64,000 nt of DNA, taken from the NCBI GenBank assembly GCA_004431415.1, contig QPMI01000097.1, positions 124,001 to 188,000 of the forward strand. Direction: 5' to 3'. The position numbers and the translations under genes were made by a program. Below the pieces are notes generated by a model. It did no database searches. It was not told the DNA's origin and was given only the letters and a program-made list of their open reading frames with translations. This DNA comes from Cyanophora paradoxa CCMP329 (taxonomy: Eukaryota > Plantae > Glaucophyta). Numbering within the stretch: position 1 is the stretch's first letter; every line of letters begins with the position of its first letter. Of this stretch, positions 5,499-55,403 are shown in pieces.

Positions 5499-5861
5499 AG
5501 CCTCAGCGAACGCCTGCGGGAATTTGAATTTCGCAGGTCCCAGGGCGCAATGGGCAGGGGCGCATCACGCGGAAAAGAACGCTGAGCGTTTCTCTAAGCC
5601 AAAGCGGCCCATCTCACCTCGCGGAGGGCTTCGCCACAGGGTGCGTCGCGGGTGCCGGGTGGCGGGCCTGCGATGCTAGCGGCATGGCTGCAAGCTAGCT
5701 GGCCAACAGCACCCTGCTACGGCGCAGGCAGCAAAGCTATCGCGCTGCCCAGCTGACACGCCGCAATTCTAGGTTACTGTACCCGGGCCACAAAAAAACA
5801 CGTTCGCGGTGCCACTTCGCCGCTGTTCGGCCTGCGGGGCATCGGACGCACCAGTGCAACA

Positions 5862-7099
5862 ATGGTGCTCCCGGGAGTCGCTCCCATTCGGCGCCTTCCC
5901 GATCTTATGGGTCGGCTCGTCGAAGCGGGTGCGCGGGCCTCCCTGGCGCCGCCCGCCACGGCGTTTCTGTGCATTGACGCAGGCCGCGCTTCGCTTGCAG
6001 GCGTCCAGTACGGCCGGTCGCCGGGCGCATGGAATCCGAAGATGGCGAGCTACCTTCTTGGCGAGCGCTCGAAGGTCTACCACCTCTTCGACCTAGATCA
6101 GACGGCAGTCGCGCTGCGGAAAGCCGCCAACTTCGTCACCGACATCACGGCGGATGGCGGCCACGTGATGTTCGTGGGGCGCCGGAAGGGCCTCGCGGAC
6201 CAGATCAAGGAGACGGCGCTGCGCGTGGATATGCCGTACTACAATGTGCGGTGGCGCGGAGGAATCTTCTCCAACTGGAAGGTGGCGGCGAACAGCGTGG
6301 ACCGCTTGATCATCATGGACCATGAGATCGCCGAGAACGAGACGACGCAGCAGATCAAGCCGCGGGAGCTGGCGCTGCTGAAGCGGCGGTGGAAGAAGCT
6401 AGACAAGGCGTTCGGCGGGCTCCGCATGCTGGAGGGCGGGCGCCCCGACGCCATCTTCCTGTTCAACCCGCTGCAGTTCCGCGGCCTCGTGCGGGAGTCG
6501 TTCTTCGAGCACATCCCGATCATCGGGGTGGTGGACTCGAGCGACGACCCGACGGGGATCACGTACCCGATCCCGGGCAACTCGACGCGCGAGGCGGCCA
6601 TCCGCCTCTACCTCGATATCATGGCGACCGCCGTGGAGCGGGGCCGGGAGCTGTGGGCGCAGCAGACGTACCGGGCGGCGCTGGAGTACGCGCGGCGTGA
6701 GGCCGGCAACATCGACTTCAACCCCGACGAGGACGAGCTCGAGGTCCCGCCCCGCGCCCCCGCCCCGCCCCGCGCCCCGCGCCCCGCCCGAGCGGCCCCG
6801 CCCCAGCTCGAGGAGGAGGAGGACACGCTCGCCGAAAAGGTCCGTTCTCGGGGGGCGCGCCGCGGGGCGTCGGGGCGGGGGCTGAGGGGAGGCGGGGCAG
6901 GCGGAGCGGGCGAAGCAGCGGCTGAAGCAGCGGGTGAAGGACGCGATCCGGGACGCGAGCCCCGTGGAGCAGCCCGACGAGGACGAGGAGGCCGACCGCC
7001 GCCGCCGCCGCTACGACGTCCGCCCGCCCCGCCCCGCCCCGTCCCGCGAGTCCCGCGAGCCCCGCGAGCCCCGCGCAGGACGACGACGAGGAGGACGAG

Positions 7100-7133
<34 letters not shown>

Positions 7134-7186
7134 CGGAGGAGGAGGGCCCCGCGCCTTCCCCAGCCGGCCCTGCCCGCGCCCGGTAG
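5862..7186 (+). CDS. rps2: Bacterial-type ribosomal protein S2 (uS2), probably mitochondrial, with acidic C-terminal extension
   Basis: Motifs WNPKMASYLLGER, HLFDLDQT, VMFVGRRK, RWRGGIFSNW, IPIIGVVDSSDDPTGITYPIPGN. Introns 5929-6000, 6744-6806, 6840-6900, 7018-7078; TAG 7184-7186. Confidence 0.9.
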
Positions 7187-7902
7187 GCCCCACGCGCCCC
7201 CTCTCCGACCCATCACCCCTTCTTCGCCCTGCGCTGGGCGCCCCGGTCCCTCTGCCCCCGCCTGGCCCCCCAACGCGTCGGCCCCGTCTGCCCCCGGGCT
7301 CTCCCGCTCCCCCTCTGGCCGCCATCAGGCCCTCCCGTGCCGTGATGCGCCCTGCCCCCTTCCATACTCCCAGGCTCTTCCTCTGCCCGCTGCCTTCGGG
7401 CCTGCGCAATCCCTCTTACTATCGAGCGCGTCGCTGTATTCTTTTCGCTTCGAATCCGGAAAGCAGATGTCTTTGCTCCTCCTCATCATAGCTAGCATGA
7501 CCTGGCGCCGGCGCGTGGCGGCGGCCGCTGCGAGTGAGCCGGCGCCATGCGCCTGGTTCAACGGTTAGCCTTAGCTGCATGCTGCAGTGCGCAGCTCCCG
7601 AAGCCGCGGCCGCCAGATGCGCGTGCCGCAGTGCAGCCGCGCGACGAGCCCCCAAGCCCGCCGGCTGATCATGAGCCCGCGGCGACGTCGACGTCGACAG
7701 CATTAATATTAATCGCGAGCCGAGCTCGAGGGCCGGGCTGGCTATGGGGCGCGCGAGTCACCCCCTGTACCCCTCTCGAGCGCTAGCAGCTAGCTTCTTT
7801 CACGCAAAGCAACAGCGCTTCAGCCCTAGCCACTACTACTGATAGGCGCACAGCTCTGCGCCCCGCAACTGCAGGCGCTGCCCGGTCGCCTCGATCGCGG
7901 TC

Positions 7903-10896
7903 ATGTCTCTCGCTGTGCAGGCGGCGAACAACGTGAAGATCTACAACGTCAGGCGCGTCTCTTCTTCGCACTCGACGACGCGCACGGCGACGCGCACGCG
8001 CTAAGCGGCCCCCCGCAGCTCGGGCAAGACCCTCCCGCAGTGGCTCTCGGAGAAGAAAAAGAAGGCGCTCAAGTACGATGAGGGTGCGGCGCCTTGAGGG
8101 GCCCCGATCGGCGCGCGCCGCGGCTGAGCGCGGCGTACGTCGCGGGCAGACTTCCGGCGGCGCATCGAGCTGGTGCAGGACCTCGAGTTCCCGACCGCGT
8201 CGCAGCGCATACATGCCACGCCTGACGGGCAGTTCCTCCTCGCCGCCGGTGCGCTCCACGGGGCGCGATCGCCGCGCGCCGCGGCGGGTCCGAGTGGTGC
8301 GCGGCAGGGAACTACCCGCCGCAGCTGCGGTGCTACGAGTTCTCGCAGCTGAGCATGAAGTTCCAGCGGAACCTCACCTGCGACGTCTCCCAGTTCCTCG
8401 TGCGCGGCGCCCCGGGGGACCGGCGGGGCGGGCGGGCGAGGGGGCGGCGCGGCGGCAGGTGCTCTCGGAGGACTACGCGAAGCTGGCGCTGATGCTCGAG
8501 GACCGCACCGTCGAGTTCCACGCCCAGTTCGGCTCCTACTACAAGACCCGCATCCCCCGCGTCCGCCCCGCCCCGCCCCGCCCCCGCCCCCGCCCGGCCG
8601 AGCGGAGGGCGGGGCGGCAGGTGGGGCGGGACATGGCGTACGACGCCGTCAGCTGCGACCTGCTCATGTGCGGCTCGGCGCCGCAGGTGCGCGGGGCGCC
8701 GGGCGGGCGGGGCGGGGGCCGGGGGCGAGGGGGCGGCGGGGGCGCGCAGGTCTACCGCCTCAACCTCGAGCAGGGCCGCTTCCTCGAGCCCCTCGAGACC
8801 GACGCCCCCGCCATCCACGTGCCCCCGCCACGCCCCGCCCCGCCCCGCCGCCCCGCCGGCCCCCGACGCCGGCTGCAGGCGTGCCACATGAACCCCGCCC
8901 ACCGGCTGCTGGCGCTCGCCTGCGAGAACGGGACCGTGGAGTGCTGGGACGCCCGGGTGGCGACGCGGGCGGGGTGCCTGGCGATCGGGGACACGGAGGC
9001 GACGGCGGTGCGGTTCGACGGGGACGGGCTGACGATGGCGGTGGGGACGAGCAGCGGGCGGGCGCTGCTCTTCGACCTGCGCTCGCGGCACCCGCTGCTG
9101 ACGAAGGACCACCACTACGGCCTCCCCGTCCACTCGCTCCGCTTCCACGCCGCCTCCCGCCACGTCATCTCTGCTGACGCCAAGGCCATCCGCATCTGGG
9201 ACCGCTCCTCGGCGCGCCCCCCGCCCCGCCGCGCACCGGGGGCGGGGGCTGACGGCGGGGGGGGCCAGGGGCGGGCGATGGCGAGCGTGGAGCCGAAGGG
9301 GGACGTGCGGGACCTCTGCGTCTTCGGCGACTCGGGCCTCCTCATGGCCTCGGGCGAGGCGCAGCGCGTCCAGGTCTACTTCATCCCGGCGCTCGGCCCG
9401 GCGCCCCGCTGGTGCTCCTTCCTCGAGAACCTCACCGAGGAGCTCGAGGAGGAGCGCCGGGGGACCGTCTACGAGGACTACAAGTTCGTCACCCGCGAGG
9501 AGCTCGAGACGGTCGGCCTGGGGCACCTCCTCGGCACCCCGCTCCTCCGCGCCTACATGCACGGCTTCTTCCTCGACCACGCGCGCCGGCCCCGCCCGCC
9601 CCGCCGCGCCCCGCGCTGAGCGCCCCGCAGCGGCTCTACCTGAAGGCGCTGGCGGCCTCCAAGCCCTTCGCCTACGAGGAGTGGCGCAAGCAGCAGGCCC
9701 GCCCCGCCCGGCCCCGCCCCCGCCCCCGGCCCCCGGCGCCCCGCCGAGGCCCCTCCCCGCAGGTGAAGGATCGCCTCGAGAAGGAGCGCGCCGCGCGCAT
9801 CGTCCTCAAGAAGCGCAACGCCGCGCCAAAGGCCCGCCCCCGCGCCCCCGGCCCCGCCCTGCCCCGCCCCGCCGCCCCGGGCGAGGCCGGCGGGGCGCAG
9901 GTGAACGCGAAGCTGGCGGAGAAGCTGGCGAGCGAAAGCGAGGGGGAGAGGGAGGGTGCGACGTCGGGCAAGAAGCGGCGCAAGGAGGACGTCGCCCGCC
10001 GCGTCACCGGCGACGCCCGCTTCGCCGCCCTCTTCCAGAACCCCGTCCGCCCGCCCACGCCCCGCCCCGCCCGCTGCCGGCGGCGGCGAAGGCCGACGGG
10101 GGCGCAGGACTTCGAGATCGACGAGTCGAGCTTCGACTACGCGCGGATGCACCCGACGCGGCCGCAGCGGGGCGGCGGCAGCGACGAGGAGGAGGGCGGG
10201 GCGCGGGGGGCGGCGCGGCGGGGGCGCGAGGCGGAGGACGCGGCGAGCGAGGAGGAGGGCCGCCCCGACGACGCCTCCACTTCCAGGCGCCCCCGCCCCA
10301 CCCCGCCCCGCCCGCCCGCCTCACCCCCCGCCCCAGCTCCAGCGGCGCCGAGGCGAGCGGCAGCGAGGAGGAGGAGGAGGAGGAGGAGCCGCGTGCGCCG
10401 GCTCCTAAGCCGAAGCAGGCGCCCGCGGCGGCCCCGCGCGGAAGCGGGCGCCGGCGATGCGGGTGCGGGAGGCCGGCGGGGGCTGCGGGGGGGCGGGGGT
10501 GACGGGGGCGGGGCGGGGCCAGGGGGCGGTGGGGAGCCGGGAGGAGGCACGGGCGATGAAGCAGACGATGGGGGAGCGGCTGGCGGCGCTCCAGGCGAGC
10601 GCGGGGGACGCCGTCGCCGTCCGCCCCGGCGGCAACAAGGAGCTCACCTTCACGCCCCGCTCCGGCGCCAAGGCCCGCCCCGCCCCGCCCCGCCCCCCCC
10701 CCCCCTCATCCCGCCGGCCCCGCCACGCCCCGCTCTGCGGCGCTGACGTACGGGCCCGCAGAGGGGCAAGGCGGGGAGCGACGGGGAGGGCGGGGGCGCG
10801 CGGCAGCGGCGGGGGATGGATGCTGTGGGCATGAAGGGCAACATCGGCGGCGCACAGCGGAACAACGCCAACCGCTGGTGGCTCAAGAAGCGCTAG
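7903..10896 (+). CDS. NOL10: Nucleolar protein 10 / Enp2 (WD40 + NUC153), about 16 exons
   Basis: NNVKIYNVSSGKTLPQWL, RRRIELVQDLEFP, YRLNLEQGRFL, IPALGPAPRWCSFLENLTEELEE, YEDYKFVT, LLRAYMHGFF, DARFAALFQNPDFEIDE. Frame near 10440-10460 unresolved. Confidence 0.93.
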
Positions 10897-10929
10897 CCCC
10901 CGTCCCCCGGCCCAGCGCTCGAGGGGCCC

Positions 10930-11640
10930 CCGGAAGCCTTTCATGATCACCAGCTGCAGTGCCACGATGTGGTCCTGAAGTCGATATCCGGATGTACATG
11001 TGGCCGTCAAGTCCGACGGTCATGGCTCATGATCATGGTCACGAAGCGAGTGAGGCTCTAGATCTATGATCAGTCTAGATCTTCACTGAGTCAATTGCAA
11101 CGTCCGACGGTCTCAAGCATACACTCATGCCATGATGATCATTGAGGCCCGAGTTCCGAGCTCGTTCACAGGCTCAATGCCCTCAGCCGCTGAGCTAGGC
11201 CCGGTGGCTCGGTAGGCTCATCCGCTGAGCGGCTTGTGGCTGGCGAGTCGCGTCCGACGGTCGGACCGTCGGACCACGGTACCGGTCCGACGGTCCTTGC
11301 GAGCTTGCAGCTGCACTGCGGCAGCTGAAGCCTTGATTGAAGCCTCATGATCATGCCATGATGATCATTGATTGAAGATGATCATCATGCCATGATAAAG
11401 CCTGGCAGGGGGCCGGGCCTTGGCATGGCCCACTGGGCCAGTGGAAGCTTCGAATTGAAACGAGTTCCAAGAAGCTTTGAATCTAGATCTAGAAGAAGCC
11501 TTTGAAGCTTCAAATTGAAACGAGTTCCAAGCCTTGAAGTTGAAAAGCTCAAGGGTTCAGAGATTCAAAATTCTGGTGCAGGTCAAGAGGTTCAATAACT
11601 GGCAAGACTCAGCGACTCGGAGAGAGAGAAAGATCTGGAA
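10930..11640. repeat. Palindrome- and short-repeat-rich intergenic island
   Basis: GTCCGACGGTC at 11011, 11102, 11252, 11285 and inverted at 11264; TCATGCCATGATGATCATTGA at 11125 and 11351; GAAGCTTCRAATTGAAACGAGTTCCAAG at 11444 and 11504. Confidence 0.75.
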
Positions 11641-16567: not shown

Positions 16568-16758
16568 CCGCCTCAAGCTTCTCCTAGCTAATTTTCGAAA
16601 TGCGCGTTCCTCGAAGGGCAAAAAGTCTCTCCAAATATCGATGTCGGGTCGATATCCCCTCGCGACCCACATCGAAATCTCTCGAGCTCCGAATCGAATC
16701 GAATTGAAGTCTCGAGCCCTCGGAGGAGAGACTATACGTACTAATTATATCTAAGTCT

Positions 16759-16838
16759 CGAGCTCAAAAGACTCTCCAGTGAAAGTCTCAGCTCCCTGTA
16801 ATTAAATGAGACTTTCACTGGAGAGTCTTTTGAGCTCG
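16759..16838. repeat. Perfect 32-bp inverted repeat with a 16-nt loop
   Basis: CGAGCTCAAAAGACTCTCCAGTGAAAGTCTCA (16759-16790) is the exact reverse complement of 16807-16838. Confidence 0.95.
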
Positions 16839-17140
16839 CACTCGAGAACGACCCGCGCTGCACAGGGGATCGCACCAGCGTGCGCGAAAATGCTGCGGAA
16901 GTGTTGAAGGCGCGTGCATTGCAATTGCCCATCATGGCCCATTGGCATCTTTCCCCGACGTGCGCTCTCGCAGGCGAACAACGTGGACGGGGAAGAGCTA
17001 GAGAGCGAGCTCTCGACGATCGATGTCATGTGTGCGAAAATGGACGACGAGGATCCCACGCAGGACGTTGAGGAAGCCCGCCGCAAGCGCGGCGATACGG
17101 CGTGAGGAAGCCCGCCGCAAGCGCGGCGATACGGCGTGAG
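16805..17140 (+). pseudogene. Probable 5'-truncated gene fragment with an internal 34-bp tandem duplication
   Basis: Exon-like ..LENDPRCTGDRTSVRENAAEVLK / GC-AG intron / ANNVDGEELESELSTIDVMCAKMDDEDPTQDVEEARRKRGDT with no in-frame start. Duplication 17069-17102 / 17103-17136. Confidence 0.35.
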
Positions 17141-22455: not shown

Positions 22456-24267
22456 ATGTCCTTACCGCAGGGCTACGCGGAATTTCAGAGCGTTGAAGCC
22501 GTGCTGGAGAAGCACGTGCCGGCGAATGAGCTGGCCTTCGTCAAGCGGGTGCTGTATGGCAAGCCGGTTGAGAAGCTGCCGGTGGCGCAAGCAGCGGCCG
22601 AACTCGCTGAAAAGCACGACTTTGAAATTCAGGCCTACAAGTACGACGCCGCACGCGAGCAGCTCCGGCCGCCGCGGGTCGTCCGCATTGGCCTCATCCA
22701 GAACAAGATTGTACGGCCGACGACGGATCCGCTGAAGGATCAGGTGCGTCTTGCAGGGGCTTCTAAACGCACCAGCAGCGCTGCTACGCAGCCGACGCCG
22801 CGAATTGCGTGCGCGCGTTGTGAAGTTGAGGCGGCGCGCGCAGTACCAGGCCATCGAGAACCGCATCCGCACGATGATTGATGCTGCGGGTGCGATGGGT
22901 GTGAACATCGTCTGCCTGCAAGAGGCGTGGAGTGCGCTCTGGCCCCGCGCCGCCCGGCGGCCCTTCGAGTCTGACCCGTCGCCAGCGGCGCCGTTCTTCA
23001 TGTGCACGCGGGAGAAGCAGCCGTGGTGCGAGTTCGCTGAGTCTCTGGAGGACGGCCCCTCCATCAAGTTCTGCCGCGAGGTCGGCCGCCCCCGGATCCG
23101 CCTGCCCCCGACAGCGCCCGCCTGGCCGACGGGGGCGCGCAGATGGCCCGCAAGCACAACATGGTTATCGTGTCGCCCATCCTGGAGCGCGATATCGTGC
23201 ACGGCGAGCAGATCCGTGCGCCGCCCCGCCACTCCTCCGCCCCCTCCCGCCTCGCCGACTCGCGCGGCAGGCAACACGGCAGTCGTCTTCAGCAACACAG
23301 GGAACATCATCGGCAAGCACAGGAAGGTTCGTGTGCGCCCATCACGGGCTTCGCGCGAGGGCCGGCGGGCCGAGGGGGGCGGGCGGGGCAGAACCACATT
23401 CCGCGGGTGGGAGACTTCAACGAGTCGACGTACTACGAGGCGGGCAACGACGGCCACCCCGTCTTCGAGACCGCTTTCGGTGCCTCCCCGCCCGCCGCGC
23501 CGCCCCCGCCCGGCGGCGGCGGACGGGGGCGGGGCAGGGCGGATCGCGGTGAACATCTGCTACGGGCGGCACCACCCGCTCAACTGGATGGCCTTCGGGC
23601 TCAACGGGGCGGAGATCGTGTTCAACCCGTCGGCCACCGTCGGCGCCCTCTCGGAGCCGCTCTGGGGCGTCGAGGCGCGGAACGCCGCCATCGCCAACTC
23701 CTACTTCGCCGCCGCCATCAACCGCGTCGGCACCGAGGCGCGCCCCGCCCCGCCCCGCCCCGCAGCGCCCCGGCGGGGCCGACCGGCGCGCAGGAGTTCC
23801 CGAACGAGTTCACGTCGGGGGACGGGGAGCCGGCGCACCGCCACTTCGGCAACTTCTACGGCTCGACGTACCTCGCCGGGCCCGACGGCTCCCGCACTCC
23901 CGTGCCCTTGCCCCGCCCCGCCCCGCCCCCGCCCCGCCCCCGCCCCGCCCCCGCCGGGGCCGCTGAGGGCGGGGCGGCAGGGCCTGTCGCGGACGCGGGA
24001 CGGGCTGCTGGTGGCCGAGCTCGACCTCAACCTCAACCGCCAGGTCCGCGACAAGTGGGGCTTCCAGGTCCGCCCCCGCCCGCCCCGCCCCGCGCCCCGC
24101 CCCGCGCCCCGCCGAGGCGCCGCCAGATGACGGGCCGGCACGAGCTCTACGCGGAAACGCTGGCGCGGGCCGTGCGCCCCGACTTCTCGCCCCAGATCGT
24201 GCGCGAGGGGGGGGCGCCCCAGGGGCCCCCGCCCCACGGCCCCGAGCCGCGCTACCACGTCCTCTGA
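22456..24267 (+). CDS. UPB1: Beta-ureidopropionase (nitrilase superfamily, pyrimidine catabolism)
   Basis: [84 protein letters not shown]. Confidence 0.97.
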
Positions 24268-30078: not shown

Positions 30079-33000
30079 ATGGCGTCGCTTCTGGAGCATC
30101 AGGAGGGCCTCCGGCGCCGGCTCGAACAGGCCGAAACTGGATACCTGGAGCAGCGCATCGGCGAGTCATTGGAGCGCGAATATGCCGCTCGTCTCGACGC
30201 TGAGCTGGTGAGTTCCGTCGCGGCGAATGATGCTCGGACTTTCAAACTTCGCGCCATGGCCATCCCCTACGACTGCGCGCTGTTCTTTGCGTCACCTGAT
30301 ATCGCGTTTCCTTGCAGTCGAGGCGGGATCAGGAAATCAGCTACCTGAAGGGCCGTCTCCGTTCGCTCGAGCTGGAGTCTGCCCAGCCCGCGAAGGTCCG
30401 GCGGCCCCACGTTGAAGAACAAAGAGTCCCCGCCCATCCAGCGTTTTAGCCGCCTCTGTCCACGCTCCAAGCGCGGCCGGCTTTCTCCCCTCGTGCTGCT
30501 CGATGCAACGGGCGCTGCTCAACGAGGCTGGGGTGTAGCGCGCCGCCGAGCGCTTCGTGTGACACACACGCCGACCGCTAATGATATCCTCGATTCCCGC
30601 AGTATGCGTCGGACGCCGCTGGGCCGTCCTCCCGCACCGTCGTGTCGAGCCTTGCCGACACCGTCCGCTCGCTGAGCTTCGGTGCGCCGCGCTTGCTTCT
30701 GGATCCCTCCTGCTCACTGCATTTGCATCTAACTGCTCATACTTTCGCAGGCAAATACATTCGTGTCATTGCGGTCGTCCAGCTGCTCATCTGCTTCCTC
30801 ACGGCGCTGGCCCGGGCAGACATCTACGCTGCCGTCGTTTTGATAGCTATCTACGCTTGCCATGAGAAGGATAAGGCGGCAATGGGAACGGTTTGTGTTC
30901 CCCTGCGTCTTTTCTGTTTCTTCTTTTCCTTGTCTGGCGATTTCTTTGCGCTTCTTCTAACAAGAGGGGTTCGTTTTCGCAGTACATCATTCTCACTCTA
31001 TTCTCTATCGTGGCGGACGTGATCTGGCTCGGTGTCCACGCGGACACGCGCCAGTTCGCCGTGACCGTCGCGTTCAAAGGCACGATGGCCTTCGTCTTCG
31101 CCATGTCCATCCTCGGCATGCTCTTCAAGGCTCGCGCTATCTCTTCTTTTCCGATTTCGTCCCGCGTCGCGAAACTCTCTCTGGTAGGTCCTCATCCTGT
31201 GGCCGGCGTACGAGCACTACAAGAGCCTGCCCGTCGAGAAGCCCTCCGAGGCTGGTGAGACCTGGCTGCGCTCTTGCCTCCCGAGCTGCCCGTGTCTGAC
31301 GCCACTGCTGTTGCACGGCAGGCTTCTCCGGCGCGCAGCAGGGGAAGAGCGCCTTCGACCGCTTCGTGTTCGGCGCGCTCCTCGTCCAATTCGTGCGCAC
31401 GGCGCCGAGGGCGCTGGTCACCCGCTCGCCCGTGACGCGGAGCAGGCGGCGGTGTTCCTTATCGCGACGGAGCGCGCGGACATCTACGCGCTCGTCCTCC
31501 TCATTGCCATGTACTCGATCAACGAGAAGGACAAGTCGGCCATGCGCGGCGTGCGCCTGTGGCCCTCCCGCCCCTCCTGCCGCCGCCGGCTCACCGCCGG
31601 GGCCAGTTCTTCCTCTTCGCGGTGCTGAGCCTGATCCTGGACGTGGTGTGGCTGGCGCTGCACCGGCTGGACCTGGACAACCTGCAGAGCATGGCGAAGA
31701 ACGCGTCGGCCACCGACTTTGTCTTCGGCATGACCATCGTCAACATGCTCTTCAAGGTCCCCGCCCCGCCCCGGCGAGCCCCCGCCCCGCCCGCCCCGCC
31801 CCTCACCCCCTCGGCAGCTCGCCTTCGCCGTCATCGCCGTCCGCATCTTCACCGAGCTGCCCCAGACCAAGCCCTCCGACAAGCGCGCCGCCCTCGGTCC
31901 GCCCCGCCCCCGCCCCCGCCCCCCGCCCCGCCTCTCGCCCCCGCCTTCCGCCGACGGCCGGGCGCGCAGCTAGCCAGATGGGCCAGGGTGCCGGCTACGG
32001 CTCGCGCGACATGCACGCGGCCTTCGCGCGCTTCGACGCCATCGCCTCCAAGCTCCCCAACGAGAAGGCCCTGTCCGCCCCTCCTCGCCCCGCCCCGCCC
32101 CGCCCCGCCCCGCCGGGTGGCGCCTGACGGGAGCGGGGTGCAGGATCTTTTTCGCGGCGGTGCAGCTGGTGCTGTGCTGCTTCGAGTCGCTGGCGCGCTG
32201 GGACGTCTTCGCTGTCGTCGTCGGCGTCTCCCTCTACGCCATCCTCGAGCGCGACAAGATCGCCATCGACATCGTGCGCCCCGCCCGCCCGCCCGCCCCG
32301 GCGCATCGCGACGCCTGACGCTGCGGGCAGTACATGGGCCTGATGGCGGTCTCGCTGGTGGCGGACCTGATCTGGTTCGGGGTCTACTCGGACCAGGACA
32401 AGTTCCTGTGGCGCACGGGCACCGTGGGGACGCTCTCCTTCGTGATCGCGATGGCGGCCCTCTCCTTCGTCCTCAAGCTCGTCTCCCTCGTCCCCGCCCT
32501 CTACTTCCGCAAGAACCTCCCCGACAAGCCCTCCGAGGACGGTCCGCCTCGCCCCGCCCGCCCCCGCGCCCCGCCCCGCCACTTGGGCGTCGCGGAGCGG
32601 GCGGCGGGGCGCAGGGATGATGCCGGAGCTGGGGATCCACGAGCGGTTCCAGCGGGCGGCGCCGGTGGAGAAGCTCTCGTACGTCATGTACGGGTTCGCG
32701 GCCGTGCACCTCGTGCTCTTCTTCGTCGTCGCCCTCGAGCGCCTCGACCCCTTCGGCGTCGTCATCCTCGCCCTCCTCTACGGCACCCACGAGTACGACC
32801 GCCGCGCCATCCTCGGCGTGCGCGCCCCGCCCCTCCCCGCCCCGCCCCGCCCCGCCCCGCCGGGGCGAGGCCGACGCGGGGGCAGTACATGCTCTTCATG
32901 GACCTCTCGCTGGTGTTCGACTGCGTGTGGCTGGTGCAGCACAAGACGGACCTCAACCAGATGTACGCCGCGGCCACGAACCGCCAGATCGCCAACAACG

Positions 33001-34131: not shown

Positions 34132-35100
34132 TCATATGTTATCGGCGAGCTTGGCGGCGAGGGAGCCGATCCAGGCGACGGTCTTGTCGCTGAAGGCGCG
34201 CTGCCGGTCCGACGCGACGATGAGGACGCCCCGGCCCGCGCCGACGGGGACGACCAGCGTGTCCTGCGTGTTGGGTGCCAGGAACGGCAGGTCCGCCGCC
34301 ACAGCCCGCGCCGCCCCGGCGTCCTCCGCCGGCCGAAGGTACGCCGGGTTCGAGCCCGACGGCAGTGCCGCCCCGGAGAGCCGCGAGGGGGCAGGGGCGT
34401 CGCGCGCGGCGAGGCCGCGGCGGTGGAGAACGGTGCAGGCGCCGCCCTCCGAGAGGCGGCAGACGAGGACCGAGCGGGCGGCCGTCTGCGTGCAGAGCAC
34501 GTACGAAGTCCAGGCGAGCTCCTCCTTCAAGCGCTCCGGAAGCTCCTCCGCGAACTCGAAGACTTCCGCGCCCTCGAGGCCGACCGAGGTGGACGGGCGC
34601 TCGACTTGCGTGCGTCGCATGAAGACGCCGACGGCGATGAGCAGCGTCGATGCAAGCACGCCGATCATCTCGGAGCGGAACTGGCTCGGGGTCGCACTCG
34701 CCGCCGACGTAAGGACGGCGCGGTTGAAGGCCAGCAGCGCGAGGCTGAGGACGCCAACGCCGACGCGCAGCCGCACTCCGTTCACGCCAGGAATGAAGAA
34801 CCCGCCGATGCCCTCCTCGTCCTGGCTCATGCGGCCCCGCGCGCGGCGGCGCTCCTCCGCCGTCGACTGCTCGCAGCGGGCCGGGGAGAAGCCCCACCAC
34901 GCCGGCGCTGGCTGCACCCTCAACGCGATGGGAGCCGCACTGAAGCGGGTCCGGCGCGCGTCCGCCTGCCCAAGGAAGCCGGAGCGCGTGACATGCGGGC
35001 GGGCCGGCGCCGAGTTGGATCGGCACAGAAAGCAGCTGGGTGCGCTTTCGAGCACTATCCGCTGCGCCGGCGCTGCGGGGATCGCCAACGAGAACGCCAT
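34132..35100 (-). CDS. CCB2: Plastid-targeted cytochrome b6f heme ci assembly factor, CCB2/CCB4 family (closer to CCB2); intronless
   Basis: Transit peptide MAFSLAIP..; LLAFNR, SQFRSEMIGVL, ELAWTSYVL, LAPNTQ..VVPVG, RAFSDKTVAWIGSLAAKL. Confidence 0.85.
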   Translation of the reverse strand: MAFSLAIPAAPAQRIVLESAPSCFLCRSNSAPARPHVTRSGFLGQADARRTRFSAAPIALRVQPAPAWWGFSPARCEQSTAEERRRARGRMSQDEEGIGGFFIPGVNGVRLRVGVGVLSLALLAFNRAVLTSAASATPSQFRSEMIGVLASTLLIAVGVFMRRTQVERPSTSVGLEGAEVFEFAEELPERLKEELAWTSYVLCTQTAARSVLVCRLSEGGACTVLHRRGLAARDAPAPSRLSGAALPSGSNPAYLRPAEDAGAARAVAADLPFLAPNTQDTLVVPVGAGRGVLIVASDRQRAFSDKTVAWIGSLAAKLADNI

Positions 35101-51487: not shown

Positions 51488-54400
51488 ATGCGGGAGCGCC
51501 GTCGCTCGTCGGCGGCCTCGACGGGGAGCCTGTGCTCGGGCGATGAGGCGACTGTCAGCCGCCGGAAGAACTCCCGCACAGGCTCGCACGGCGGGAGAGC
51601 AGGCGGGGCCAAGGTGGAGGCGGCGGACCTAGGCCTCTTCGCGGTGCTCCTCCTGGCGGCGAGCTGCGCGAGCACGCTGTCGAGCGACGATCTCTCCGGC
51701 GCAACGAAGGCGCTCACCATCGCCGGCCTCGCCCTCCCGGCGGCCGTGAGCCTCGCCGCGCCGGGGCGGGCGCGGGCGGCGGCCGCCGCGTGGGTCGCGG
51801 CGGCGGCTAGCGTGGCGGCGTCGCTGGTGGGAAGCGCCGCGGGCCCGGGGGCCGGGCATCACCAGCTGGCGTTCACCCTCGCCTGCTGCGCCACGTACGC
51901 CTCGGTGCAGCTCGCGCCGGGGGCCTGCGCCGCCACCCTCCTCGTCGTCGCGTGCGGCTCCTGCCTCGCGGCGGGCCCCCCCGGCCTCTTCGCCCCGCTC
52001 CAGCTTGCCTCCGTCGTCGCCGTCGTGCGCCGCCCGGCTTCCGTGCCGGTGGGCGCGGGGGGTGACGCGGCGGGCCCGGGGGCGCAGCTGCGGGGGCGGG
52101 AGAAGGAGGCGGCGGCGGGCCTGCAGGAGGCGCAGAGCAAGAGACGCGAGGCCGAGGCCGTCAAGTGCGCGATCAAATTTGGTGTTCCAGCTCTTCCGCG
52201 CGAGTGTGACCCCCGAGCGCGCCCCCCGGCAGGCTCTCCTTCCTCTCCAACGCCCGCCCCTCCCGCCCCGCCCCCGCCCGCCCGGCCCCCCCCCGAGACC
52301 GCCGCGCAGATCTCGCACGAGCTGCGCAGCCCCTTGTCCGGCATCCTCGGCACCTGGTGCCCTCGCCCGCAGACGCGCCCCCGCCGGCCGCGACGCTCGC
52401 TGAGGGGCGCCCGCAGGGAGCTCCTCATGGCGCGCCGCCGCGCCCCGCCCCGCGCCGCCGGTGTGAGGGGAGGGCCGTTGCAGGAAACGGAGCTGAGCGG
52501 GAGCCAGGCGGAGCTCCTGACGATGCTCGGCAGCGCCGCCGGCGGCATGCTCGAGATCGGTACGCGCGCGGGGCGGGGCACGAGGCGGGCTGGGCGGGGG
52601 GAGGGAGGGCCGAGGGCGGGCGGGGGCCGGGGGCAGTGAACGAGCTGCTGGAGTACACGAAGCTGCAGAGCGGGCACGTGCGGGTCCGCAGCGCGCCCTT
52701 CCGTATGCGCGAGTGCCTCAAGGATGCCATCTCCGCCGCCTGGTCCACCGCCAAGGCCCGCCCCCCTTGGCCCCCGCCCCCCGCCCCGCCCCCCTCTCCT
52801 CTTTTCCCTTCTGAGCTGGCGGAGCGGGGGGGCAGGCGAAGAACATCCCGATGTCGCTGGTGGTCGAGGCCGGGGCGGACCAGTGGTTCCGTAGTGACGC
52901 CCAGAAGCTGAGACAGGTCGTGCTCAACTATCTATTCAACGCTGTAAAATTGAGTGTTTGGTTTCGATTGGGGGGAAGCGGGTTGGCTCACGGGGCGCAG
53001 TTCTCGAGCGAGGGCGAGGTGGTGGTGCGGGTCGGCGTGGAGGCGGCGGGGGCGCGGGGCGAGGAGGGGGAGTGGTGCGCGGGGGGCGGCGCGCCCCGGG
53101 CGCCGCGGGAGGGCGAGGAGCTGGTGTGCGTGCGGGTGGCGGACTGCGGGCCGGGGATCGCGCGGGAGGACTTTCCCCGCCTCTTCCAGCGGTTCTCCCA
53201 GCTCGGCGACGTCTACACCAACAAGTCCAAGGGCACCGGCCTCGGCACGCCCGCCCCCCCGCCCGCCCCCCCGCTCGCGGCGCCCCCCGCCGCCCCCGCC
53301 GCTCACGGCCCCCGCGCGCAGGGCTGAGCATCTGCAGGGAGATCGCGGAGGCGATGCAGGGGGCGGTGGGGCTGACGTCGGACCCCGAGCGCGGCGGCTC
53401 CACCTTCTTCTTCCGCGTGCCCCTCCGCCGCCACGAGCCGGGCCAGCCCCCCGGCCCCGCCCAGGCCGGCGGCCCTCCGGCCGAGCTCGAGGAAGCGGCG
53501 GGGCGGGCCGGCGGGGAGGAGCGCGGGGCGGCGCCGGAGGAGCCGTTCGTGAAGCGCTGGGTCCCCGTCGCCACCCGCGGGAGCTTCGTGCGGCACGGGT
53601 CGGAGGGGGTGATGTCGCATCAGAGCTCGCAGGCGGAGGGGCCGGGGCCGGGCGAGGTGCGCTGGCGCGGGGGCGAGGCGGGGCCCGGCGAGGAGGGCTC
53701 GGAGGCGGCGGCGAGCCCGCGGCCCTCCTTCCAGGTGGTCCTCGAGACGGCGGCCCCCGGGACGGGCCGCCCCGCCCGCATCCTCGTCCCCTCCACCGAG
53801 TTCGGGGGGGCGGGCGCCTCGCTGCGCTGCGTCGTGCCCTACGCCACCCTCGCCGCCTTCGTCCGCGACCTCGAGCGCGGCGCCGGCCGCCGCCCCGACC
53901 AGCCCCGCGCCGGCCCCGCCTCCCTCCCCTCCTCCCCTCGCCGCCCGCCGGCCTCGCAGCACAGCTCCCCGGGCTGCCGCCCTCCAGGGCGAGCCGGAGA
54001 GCCCGCCGCAGGGCGGCTGCCGACCGGCGGGGGACCCTCGTCGCCGGCCTCGCCGGGCCTCGGGGTGGCGGGCCTGGGCCCCCTCCTGCCCCCGCCCGCC
54101 CGCCGCACCAGCGTCGACGAGGCCGCCGGCCGCCGCCTCGTCGGCCCCGGGGAGGCCCAGCGCCGCTCCACCCTCCCCACCGCCGCCGCCGCTGCCATCG
54201 CCCACGCCGCCGCCGCTGCCGCCGCCGCCCACGCCGCCGGCGCCGCCGCCGCCGCGCAGGAGCACAACCCGCAGGCGCGCAGCTCGCCGCCGGCGCGCCT
54301 GGGGGCCGCCGCGCCGCCCTCCCTCCTGCGCTCCGCCCTGCTCGCCGCCTCCGGGCCGAGCGCGGCTTCGATGTCCTCGCCTCCGAGGGGTGCGCCGGCG

Positions 54401-55403
54401 CCGCCCCGCCGCCTCGCCGGCCCGCGACAAGGACGCAGGGAGGGCGTGCGGGGCCGGCGGGGCGGCGGGCGAGCATCCCCTCGGGCTCTGCGTGCGGCCC
54501 CGCCTCGCCTCGCCCGCCCTCCGCGCCGCGCCGCGGGGGTCCTCACGGGGGCGGCAGGGAGGCGCGGGGCGTGCCGCTCGGTCTCGCCTCCCTCTCTTCC
54601 GCCCTCCACGCGCCCCTCGCCGCCGGCCCGTCGAGCTCGCCGGCGCCGGCCGCCTCCTCGCCCCGCGAGCCGCCCCGGCACGCCCCGCCGAGGCGGCGGC
54701 GGCCGAGCTGGGGAAGGCGAGCGGGGGGCCTGCTGGGGGCGGTGCGGAGGGCGCGTTCCGGCCCCGTGTGCTGCTCGTGGACGGTCCGCCCCGCTTCTGC
54801 CGGCGCCTCGGCGAGCTGGAGCTGACGGCGGGGCGGGGCGGGGCGGGCAGACGAGCGGATTAACCTGCGGGTGGCGCAGACGATGCTGCAGGCCCTCGGC
54901 TGCGACGTCGACGTCGAGGCCGACGGCCGCGCCGCCGTCGACCGCTTCGCAGCCTCCCTCCGCCACGGGCCCCCCTACAACCTCGTCGTCATGGACCAGC
55001 AGGCCCGCCCGCCCCGCGCCCCGCCCCCGGCGGCGGCGGCCGAGGGCCGGGGCGCAGATGCCGGTGTTGAACGGGCTGGACGCGACGCGGGCGATCCGGG
55101 AGATGCTGGGCGAGGCGCCCGGGCCGCCCGTGCTGGGCCTCACGGCCAACGCGAGCGCCGAGTCGCGCGCCCTCTGCCTCGCCGCCGGCATGGCCGACGT
55201 GCGCCGCCCGCCCGCCCCCTCCTCGCCGCCCCGCCCCGGCCCCCACGGGGCGGCCCGCGCAGGTCTTCACGAAGCCCTTCCGCAAGAGGGACCTCCGCGA
55301 GCTCCTCGAGCGCTGGGCCGGCCTCCCCCCCGCCCCCTCCCCCTCCCCGAACCCCACCCCCCGCCCCGCGGGGGCGCCCCCGCCCGCCCCCGCCGGCCCC
55401 TAG
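51488..55403 (+). CDS. Membrane-bound hybrid histidine kinase (TM input, HisKA, HATPase, linker, receiver)
   Basis: FLSNISHELRSPLSGILG, LRQVVLNYLFNAVK-F, VADCGPGI, LFQRFSQ, GTGLGLSI; REC RVLLVDD..VVMDQQMPVLNGLDA..GLTAN..FTKPF. Confidence 0.93.

Follow-up and report, generated by a model that had tools for sequence, protein, structure and literature searches.

Introns that begin with GC instead of GT are common in a 64,000-nucleotide stretch of the nuclear genome of the glaucophyte alga Cyanophora paradoxa CCMP329 (GenBank assembly GCA_004431415.1, contig QPMI01000097.1, positions 124,001 to 188,000; hereafter referred to as the window, from the first letter of which all coordinates are counted). 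They account for 7 of the 15 introns of the gene encoding nucleolar protein 10 (NOL10), a count with a probability of 7e-9 against a rate of 2%, and for 67 of the 149 introns (45%) predicted in the window, in agreement with an earlier note, made from the DNA letters alone, that had called GC-AG introns common here. Transcript contigs showed that introns of this kind are removed exactly at their GC..AG borders. The GC-AG trait is thus confirmed to be real; it is striking in degree and resembles that of other GC-rich algae. The explanation that we favor, with a probability of roughly 0.7, is a drift of splice signals under GC pressure, the drifted signals being read by a basically standard major spliceosome.

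The RNA evidence for NOL10 was collected over positions 5600-11100 of the window, where contigs X1, X3 and X5 (three runs, two studies), which are spliced transcripts, were compared with contigs X11, which are genomic DNA with the introns kept. Of the words of the stretch, approximately half occur in the sequencing runs found, the proportion that spliced RNA should give. Statements on exon-exon joints refer to the joints listed, 19 further joints lying outside this list. Three of the NOL10 GC donors were seen directly at RNA joints [Table 1]. Joint 7949>8016 can be placed in four registers, of which 7953-8018 (GC..AG) is the sole standard one, and the sole standard register of joint 9210>9268 is likewise GC..AG, at 9212-9268. 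Use of nearby GT donors in place of the GC donors, an outcome that the earlier note had itself envisaged, is not what the transcripts revealed, as no GT..AG register exists at any of the three joints. Donors 9697 and 9832 fit the RNA by length accounting, since the 133+2 letters found between 9580 and 9899 in record 22 of X5 equal the sum of exons 9631-9696 and 9763-9831, and donor 10673 fits it by position, since record 5 of X1 begins at 10760, as a join of 10672 to 10762 predicts. The remaining GC donor, at 10287, was absent among the listed RNA joints; it is required for an open frame, is used by a public gene model (see below) and was recovered by our gene finder. Of the seven GC donors originally read from the NOL10 sequence, three are shown by RNA joints, three fit the RNA by length or position and one is supported by the public model and the reading frame. 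GT..AG joints were listed for seven of the eight GT introns of the gene (8084, 8249, 8400, 8687, 8819, 10045 and 10463), the eighth (8561) lying in a masked repeat and being absent among the listed joints. All RNA joints end in AG.

The gene model itself rests on several lines of evidence. When the exons were searched one by one, the Pfam profiles Beta-prop_NOL10_N, NOL10_2nd and NUC153 matched single NOL10 exons. The open reading frame (ORF) at 8078-9616, which spans four retained introns of 3n length, served as a natural read-through query in a word search, and its top match was the public gene model 'eukprot:tig00000388_g24807.t1' (P0001). Residues 1-582 of P0001 are identical to those of the 15-intron model of NOL10, and the two diverge only after a frameshift site; P0001 therefore shares the first 13 introns of NOL10, including six of the seven GC donors. 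Public Cyanophora gene models, in other words, already contain GC-AG introns implicitly. The frameshift lies in the C run at 10428-10431, and the 15-intron model yields an intact frame of 686 residues only with one extra C after 10431. This extra C is present in all three RNA runs, while the X11 DNA contigs agree with the window; an error of the assembly, a difference between alleles or slippage at the RNA level may account for it. P0001 handles the frameshift through different splice choices.

Beyond NOL10, introns were predicted with a semi-Markov gene finder consisting of a codon model, a second-order intron model and donor and acceptor matrices, self-trained on the window, the G+C content of which ranges from 65 to 84% in 2-kb bins. 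GT and GC donors were weighted equally and an AG acceptor was required, which makes the window-wide AG acceptor a property of the model rather than an independent test. Trained only outside 5600-11100, the gene finder placed 15 of the 17 RNA-supported introns exactly; of the two that it missed, one lies beside the frameshift and the other in a 5′ untranslated region (UTR). A version devoid of the donor matrix found all 15 NOL10 introns with only 8 borders exact, and its border statistics were discarded for that reason; a version in which any donor dinucleotide was allowed was noisy, picking CC and CG through register slips. The 149 predicted introns are distributed over 31 gene pieces, have a median length of 63 nt and, in 72% of cases, a length that is not a multiple of 3; 82 of them start with GT. 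The share of GC donors is very uneven across genes, from 0/9 to 4/4, and 59 of the 67 predicted GC donors lack any in-frame GT at a distance of up to 12 nt. Eleven further GC donors had been put forward outside NOL10, all of them on the + strand and followed by a C-rich stretch and by an AG 50-90 nt downstream. The gene finder reproduced nine of them at their exact positions and missed the putative donors at 31130 and 35302.

Table 1 NOL10 and other features of the window with GC-AG introns (coordinates in the window)
Feature	Position	Strand	Evidence and remarks
NOL10 (nucleolar protein 10) gene	7903..10896	+	16 exons, 15 short introns (50-89 nt), 7 GC-AG
GC-AG intron 1 (CAG/GCGCGT...CGCAG)	7953..8018	+	Joint 7949>8016, ambiguity 3, in X1, X3 and X5
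GC-AG intron 8 (TCG/GCGCGC...GCCAG)	9212..9268	+	Joint 9210>9268, ambiguity 2, three runs
GC-AG intron 9 (CAC/GCGCGC...CGCAG), without exonic AG	9581..9630	+	Joint 9580>9631, ambiguity 0, three runs
GC-AG intron 10 (CAG/GCCCGC)	9697..9762	+	Length accounting in X5 record 22, P0001, gene finder
GC-AG intron 11 (AAG/GCCCGC)	9832..9900	+	Length accounting in X5 record 22, P0001, gene finder
GC-AG intron 13 (CAG/GCGCCC), C at +5	10287..10336	+	P0001, frame, gene finder
GC-AG intron 15 (AAG/GCCCGC)	10673..10761	+	X1 record 5, frame check, gene finder
GT-AG intron sharing the +3 to +6 context (AGG/GTGCGG)	8084..8149	+	GT..AG RNA joint, frame check
Other NOL10 GT-AG introns	8249-8307, 8400-8458, 8561-8620, 8687-8749, 8819-8878, 10045-10107, 10463-10522	+	RNA joints except 8561, frame
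C run, one C shorter in the window than in transcript contigs; NOL10 frame breaks	10428..10431	+	RNA contigs, frame check
GC-AG intron (GAG/GCGCGC), carbon-nitrogen hydrolase gene	23738..23793	+	Gene finder; CN_hydrolase profile 143-210 on upstream exon
GC-AG intron (AAC/GCCCGC), hybrid histidine kinase; splits H-box FLSN/ISHELRSPL	52252..52309	+	Conservation and frame only
GC-AG intron (TCG/GCACGC), splits HATPase_c G2 box GTGLG/LSI	53245..53321	+	Pfam profile, gene finder
GC-AG intron (CAG/GCCCGC), receiver domain, VMDQQ/MPVLNG	55003..55057	+	Gene finder; downstream exon starts at Response_reg profile 52

Over the 149 predicted introns, the donor consensus reads (C/A)(A)G/G-Y-S-C-G-C (where Y is T or C and S is G or C) and carries 6.1 bits of information relative to base composition. 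On the exon side, -3 is C or A, -2 is A in 38% of GT and 55% of GC donors, and -1 is G in 62% of cases; on the intron side, +1 G and +2 T or C are followed by G (52%) or C (41%) at +3, C at +4 (94%), G at +5 (74%) and C at +6 (76%). Among the 17 RNA-supported introns, +4 is C in all 17 (P = 4.5e-5 against the C content of introns) and +5 is G in 15 (P = 3.6e-6), showing that +4 C and +5 G are position-specific and bearing out the donor consensus G(T/C)NCG suggested in the earlier note. When any G-N donor was allowed, the gene finder took GT 77 times, GC 62 times, GG 11 times and GA twice. As the DNA contains GG[GC]CG and GC[GC]CG equally often, the small number of GG donors chosen indicates that +2 is specifically a pyrimidine.

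The acceptor of the predicted introns is GCAG (-4 G 91%, -3 C 95%) and is preceded by a G-rich stretch, with no polypyrimidine tract. The intron interior is 56% C and 33% G (~89% G+C), the first third containing 61% C and 28% G, and the last third 45% G. The frequency of A is highest at -12 to -20, in the contexts CTGAC, CTGAG, CCGAG and GCGAG, which may represent the branch site; a branch-like CTGAC is found, for example, 17 nt before the 3′ end of NOL10 intron 15. The motif CT[GA]A[CG] occurs in only 41 of the 149 introns, and three predicted introns have no internal A. The GCAG acceptor, the G-rich tract and a branch-like A at 12-20 nt from the 3′ end raise the question of U2AF binding. Every GC donor fits GC[GCA]C[GC]N, unlike the donor [AG]TATCCTT that, together with a TCCTTAAC branch box, marks U12-type introns. 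The U12-type donor RTATCCTY has only three matches in the window, which is the chance level, and none at a predicted donor; the matches at 30584 and 44703 were inspected and neither is intron-like. The GC-AG introns described here appear to be of the U2-type (major spliceosome) class.

In mammals, where GC-AG introns represent ~1% of the total, compensation for the C at +2 is provided by the near-perfect pairing of AG/GCAAGT to U1, the canonical 5′ arm of which is AUACUUACCUG; the canonical U6 box is ACAGAGA. Any such compensation in the window would lie on the exon side. Exonic AG precedes 48% of the predicted GC donors vs 22% of the predicted GT donors (P = 0.0016), and 5 of 7 vs 2 of 10 donors in the RNA-supported set, and the intronic positions +3 to +6 of GC donors are no closer to GTAAGT. 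That some GC donors nevertheless do without exonic AG, as had been claimed, was confirmed by RNA at 9581 (CAC/GCGCGC). Among predicted introns, the share of GC donors amounts to 32, 31, 50 and 69% over the quartiles of flanking GC content (P = 8e-4), a rise in line with the choice of T or C at +2 being nearly neutral and tracking the local mutation or conversion bias. The intron's own GC content showed no relation to donor type (P = 0.98), flanking GC alone being predictive.

A number of other features of the window may be recorded here. Upstream of NOL10 lies a ribosomal protein S2-like gene (5929-7144, + strand), all introns of which are GT-AG, including an RNA-confirmed intron of 72 nt (5929-6000) in or near its 5′ UTR. 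Downstream of NOL10, an AT-richer intergenic stretch (10950-11600) is crowded with short palindromes of the TCATGATCA type and with repeats of the motif GTCCGACGGTC, and looks like a repeat or mobile-element remnant. The hybrid histidine kinase gene listed in Table 1 extends over 51608-55325 (+ strand) and encodes an H-box, a HATPase_c and a receiver domain joined by long low-complexity Ala/Gly/Pro linkers; it has ~14 short introns, 8 of which are predicted to be GC-AG. A single-exon ORF of 322 amino acids on the opposite strand (34132-35100) starts with MAFSLAIPAAP..., which we take to be the phenylalanine-containing type of N-terminus used for plastid import in Cyanophora; an exact look-up of this ORF in a contig collection gave no match. 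Finally, a long near-perfect hairpin at 16751-16845 is matched weakly, on both strands, by several unrelated models of microRNA precursors (46 bits vs gathering thresholds of 80-100) and is probably a generic inverted repeat.

According to the explanation that we favor, the strong GC pressure on the genome would move every splice signal to G or C wherever the splicing machinery tolerates it. C would thereby have replaced T at +2 in ~45% of introns, the branch site, located 12-20 nt before the 3′ end, would have drifted to S-Y-G-A-S, the polypyrimidine tract would have been lost and the acceptor would have become GCAG. The anchors retained, namely -2A, -1G, +1G, +5G, the branch A and AG, would let a standard spliceosome recognize the sites, assisted by intron definition in the form of a very short intron length and of the contrast between codon-structured exons and low-complexity introns that are C-rich and then G-rich. 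T or C at +2 would be nearly neutral and follow local base composition. GYGCGC itself would arise from a GTATGT-type donor by the transitions A>G and T>C, and +4 of a GTATGT-type donor is already mismatched with U1, as in yeast. We favor drift because the positions kept are the canonical anchors, because GC donors lean on the exon positions that pair with U1, because their share rises with flanking GC content and because GTGCG-type donors and genomes rich in GC donors are known from other GC-rich algae (see below). Since discrimination by U1 is weak and since splicing occurs at 9581 with almost no match, site choice must, under the same explanation, lean on intron definition, and we infer that intron length, the exon/intron contrast in composition and the GCAG acceptor guide it.

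Could the GC donors instead result from faulty gene models or a faulty assembly, nearby GT donors being those truly used? The window does differ from the transcripts at least once, by the C missing after 10431, and the gene finder run without a donor matrix misplaced 7 of 15 borders. Yet three GC..AG joints are found directly in transcript contigs, one of them with zero ambiguity, and a GT..AG register is impossible at each of them, which refutes such an artefact for NOL10; for the window at large, most predicted GC donors have no in-frame GT nearby, and the Pfam profile is continuous over the intron at 53245, the upstream exon ending at position 75/111 of HATPase_c and the downstream exon starting at 77/111. 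The probability left to an artefact is therefore close to negligible. Another explanation, contained in the earlier note as structure-guided recognition, is that introns fold such that their C-rich 5′ part pairs with their G-rich 3′ part, thereby joining donor and acceptor and replacing recognition by sequence. The composition of the intron thirds is of the kind required, and the 5′ and 3′ segments of introns can form duplexes of approximately -27 kcal/mol. Ends of the same intron, however, pair no better than ends of different introns (-26.7 vs -27.9 kcal/mol; Wilcoxon P = 0.21), which speaks against intron-specific co-variation and for a generic complementarity of the ends, and led us to reject an intron-specific hairpin mechanism. 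In addition, the folding z-score of whole introns is only -0.5, with 14% of introns below -2, and several introns counted as RNA-confirmed, such as 9697-9762 and 10287-10336, are C-rich throughout. Folding as a substitute for sequence recognition thus appears very unlikely, and this part of the earlier proposal is not supported.

Difficulties for drift read by a standard spliceosome arise from the donor itself. In the least GC-rich third of introns, +4 is C in 98% of cases, which identifies +4 C as a position-specific signal and rules out base composition as its source; G at +4 would suit GC pressure equally well, and some reader or some exclusion must therefore act at this position. That canonical pairing to U1 discriminates poorly, in keeping with the earlier suspicion of an altered recognition, is also apparent from the number of canonical pairs out of nine, which averages 5.3 in GT donors vs 4.7 in decoys and 4.1 in GC donors vs 3.8 in decoys, the latter two being barely separated (P = 0.06), and CAC/GCGCGC at 9581 is spliced despite almost no match to U1. 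Also to be counted against drift is the nature of the window-wide statistics: most of the 149 introns are predictions of a self-trained model, the window-wide logo is partly circular because the donor matrix was seeded with NOL10 introns, and wrong predictions where the DNA is richest in GC may exaggerate the trend of GC-donor share with local GC. An alternative that would accommodate the donor, and the one proposed in the earlier note, is a changed U1 5′ arm, a changed U6 ACAGAGA box or modification thereof, or a changed U1C or LUC7, such that G-Y-S-C-G-C is specifically paired or bound. Positions +4 to +6, of which +5 alone agrees with canonical U1, hold approximately half of the 6.1 donor bits, and +4 C is near-invariant irrespective of intron GC content. 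The same idea was put forward by Irimia and Roy for the GTGCGTG donors of Ostreococcus (PMC2483917), and the finding by Larue and Roy of U11 as the only minor small nuclear RNA (snRNA) of Cyanophora hints at divergent snRNAs (PMC10639083). On the other hand, the split of +3 between G and C leaves no single U1 base that could pair there, the -2A/-1G and +5G matching canonical U1 are retained, with GC donors leaning on the exonic pair even more, and in other lineages whose splice sites deviate, the core snRNAs have kept their sequences (PMC13326754). Rfam scans of the window at gathering and E-value thresholds found no U1, U2, U4, U5 or U6, and our literature search found no paper on Cyanophora snRNAs. 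Altogether, we regard an alteration of U1, U6 or their associated proteins as rather unlikely, and likewise see only a small chance that some changed part of the Cyanophora spliceosome actively reads the near-invariant +4 C together with +6 C. The reader could be a U1 that places a G across from +4 and +6, a U6 whose ACAGAGA box has changed in sequence or in modification, or a specialized protein of the U1C/LUC7 type. If +4 C were actively read, the 5′ splice-site code of glaucophytes would be truly different, beyond drift.

Cyanophora paradoxa is the reference glaucophyte in studies of plastid origin, and its gene models must accordingly be right. The published assembly is 67.6% GC and has 9.2 introns per gene, which average 86 bp in length, and its authors stated that gene models need manual curation (Price et al. 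2019, PMC6704402). Because ~45% of the donors are GC, the acceptor is GCAG and a polypyrimidine tract is lacking, default settings will not suffice for standard gene predictors and splice-aware aligners. In the literature covered, which included PMC6704402 and PMC3700990 and did not extend to the 2012 genome paper and its supplement, we found no published GC-AG share or donor consensus for Cyanophora. After Emiliania huxleyi, Cyanophora provides a second, independent, intron-rich genome in which GT and GC donors are near parity, and it may be used to ask what minimum of sequence the major spliceosome needs and what reads +4.

The closest known system is E. huxleyi, in which 56-65% of donors (~60%) are GC, as verified by reverse transcription PCR and attributed to a genome of 65% GC (Feldmesser et al. 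2014, PMC4028052). Both algae have a very GC-rich nuclear genome in which roughly half of the donors or more are GC, have kept the AG acceptor and have low-complexity, repeat-rich introns that mislead gene predictors. They differ in that E. huxleyi is a haptophyte and Cyanophora a glaucophyte, and in that the introns of Cyanophora are much shorter; the near-fixed +4 C and the GCAG acceptor are documented here for Cyanophora, and no statement on those positions was found in the text of PMC4028052. A raised share of GC-AG introns along with high genomic GC is also known from the pelagophytes Aureococcus anophagefferens and Pelagomonas calceolata (14-17%, tied to high genomic GC), their low-GC relative Aureoumbra having only 0.32% (bioRxiv 10.1101/2024.10.30.620910). 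In contrast to these pelagophytes, which have less than one intron per gene, Cyanophora reaches ~45% and harbors 15 introns in NOL10 alone. The +3 G, +4 C and +5 G of Cyanophora recall another GC-rich alga, Ostreococcus lucimarinus, for whose atypical donor consensus GTGCGTG the authors had asked about matching snRNA changes (Irimia and Roy 2008, PMC2483917). Ostreococcus, however, has few introns, and these have GT donors and strong signals of extended length (GTGCGTG, GACTGACG), whereas Cyanophora is intron-rich, has C instead of T at +6 and uses GC at half of its donors. With the GC-AG introns of mammals, those of Cyanophora share their U2-type nature and the stronger exonic consensus of GC donors; unlike the mammalian AG/GCAAGT, their intronic part reads GCSCGC, and some donors (CAC/GCGCGC) are almost without complementarity to U1. 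Finally, in the tunicate Fritillaria borealis, 95% of introns depart from GT/AG at both of their ends and the core snRNAs are conserved, and duplicated U2AF subunits and an altered N6-methyladenosine modification of U1 and U6 have been shown there experimentally (PMC13326754). A lineage-wide departure of splice sites is thus handled in F. borealis by a modified yet recognizable major spliceosome, a situation that may be akin to that of Cyanophora, which, as known here from its intron sequences, differs from the tunicate in retaining both the +1 G and the AG.

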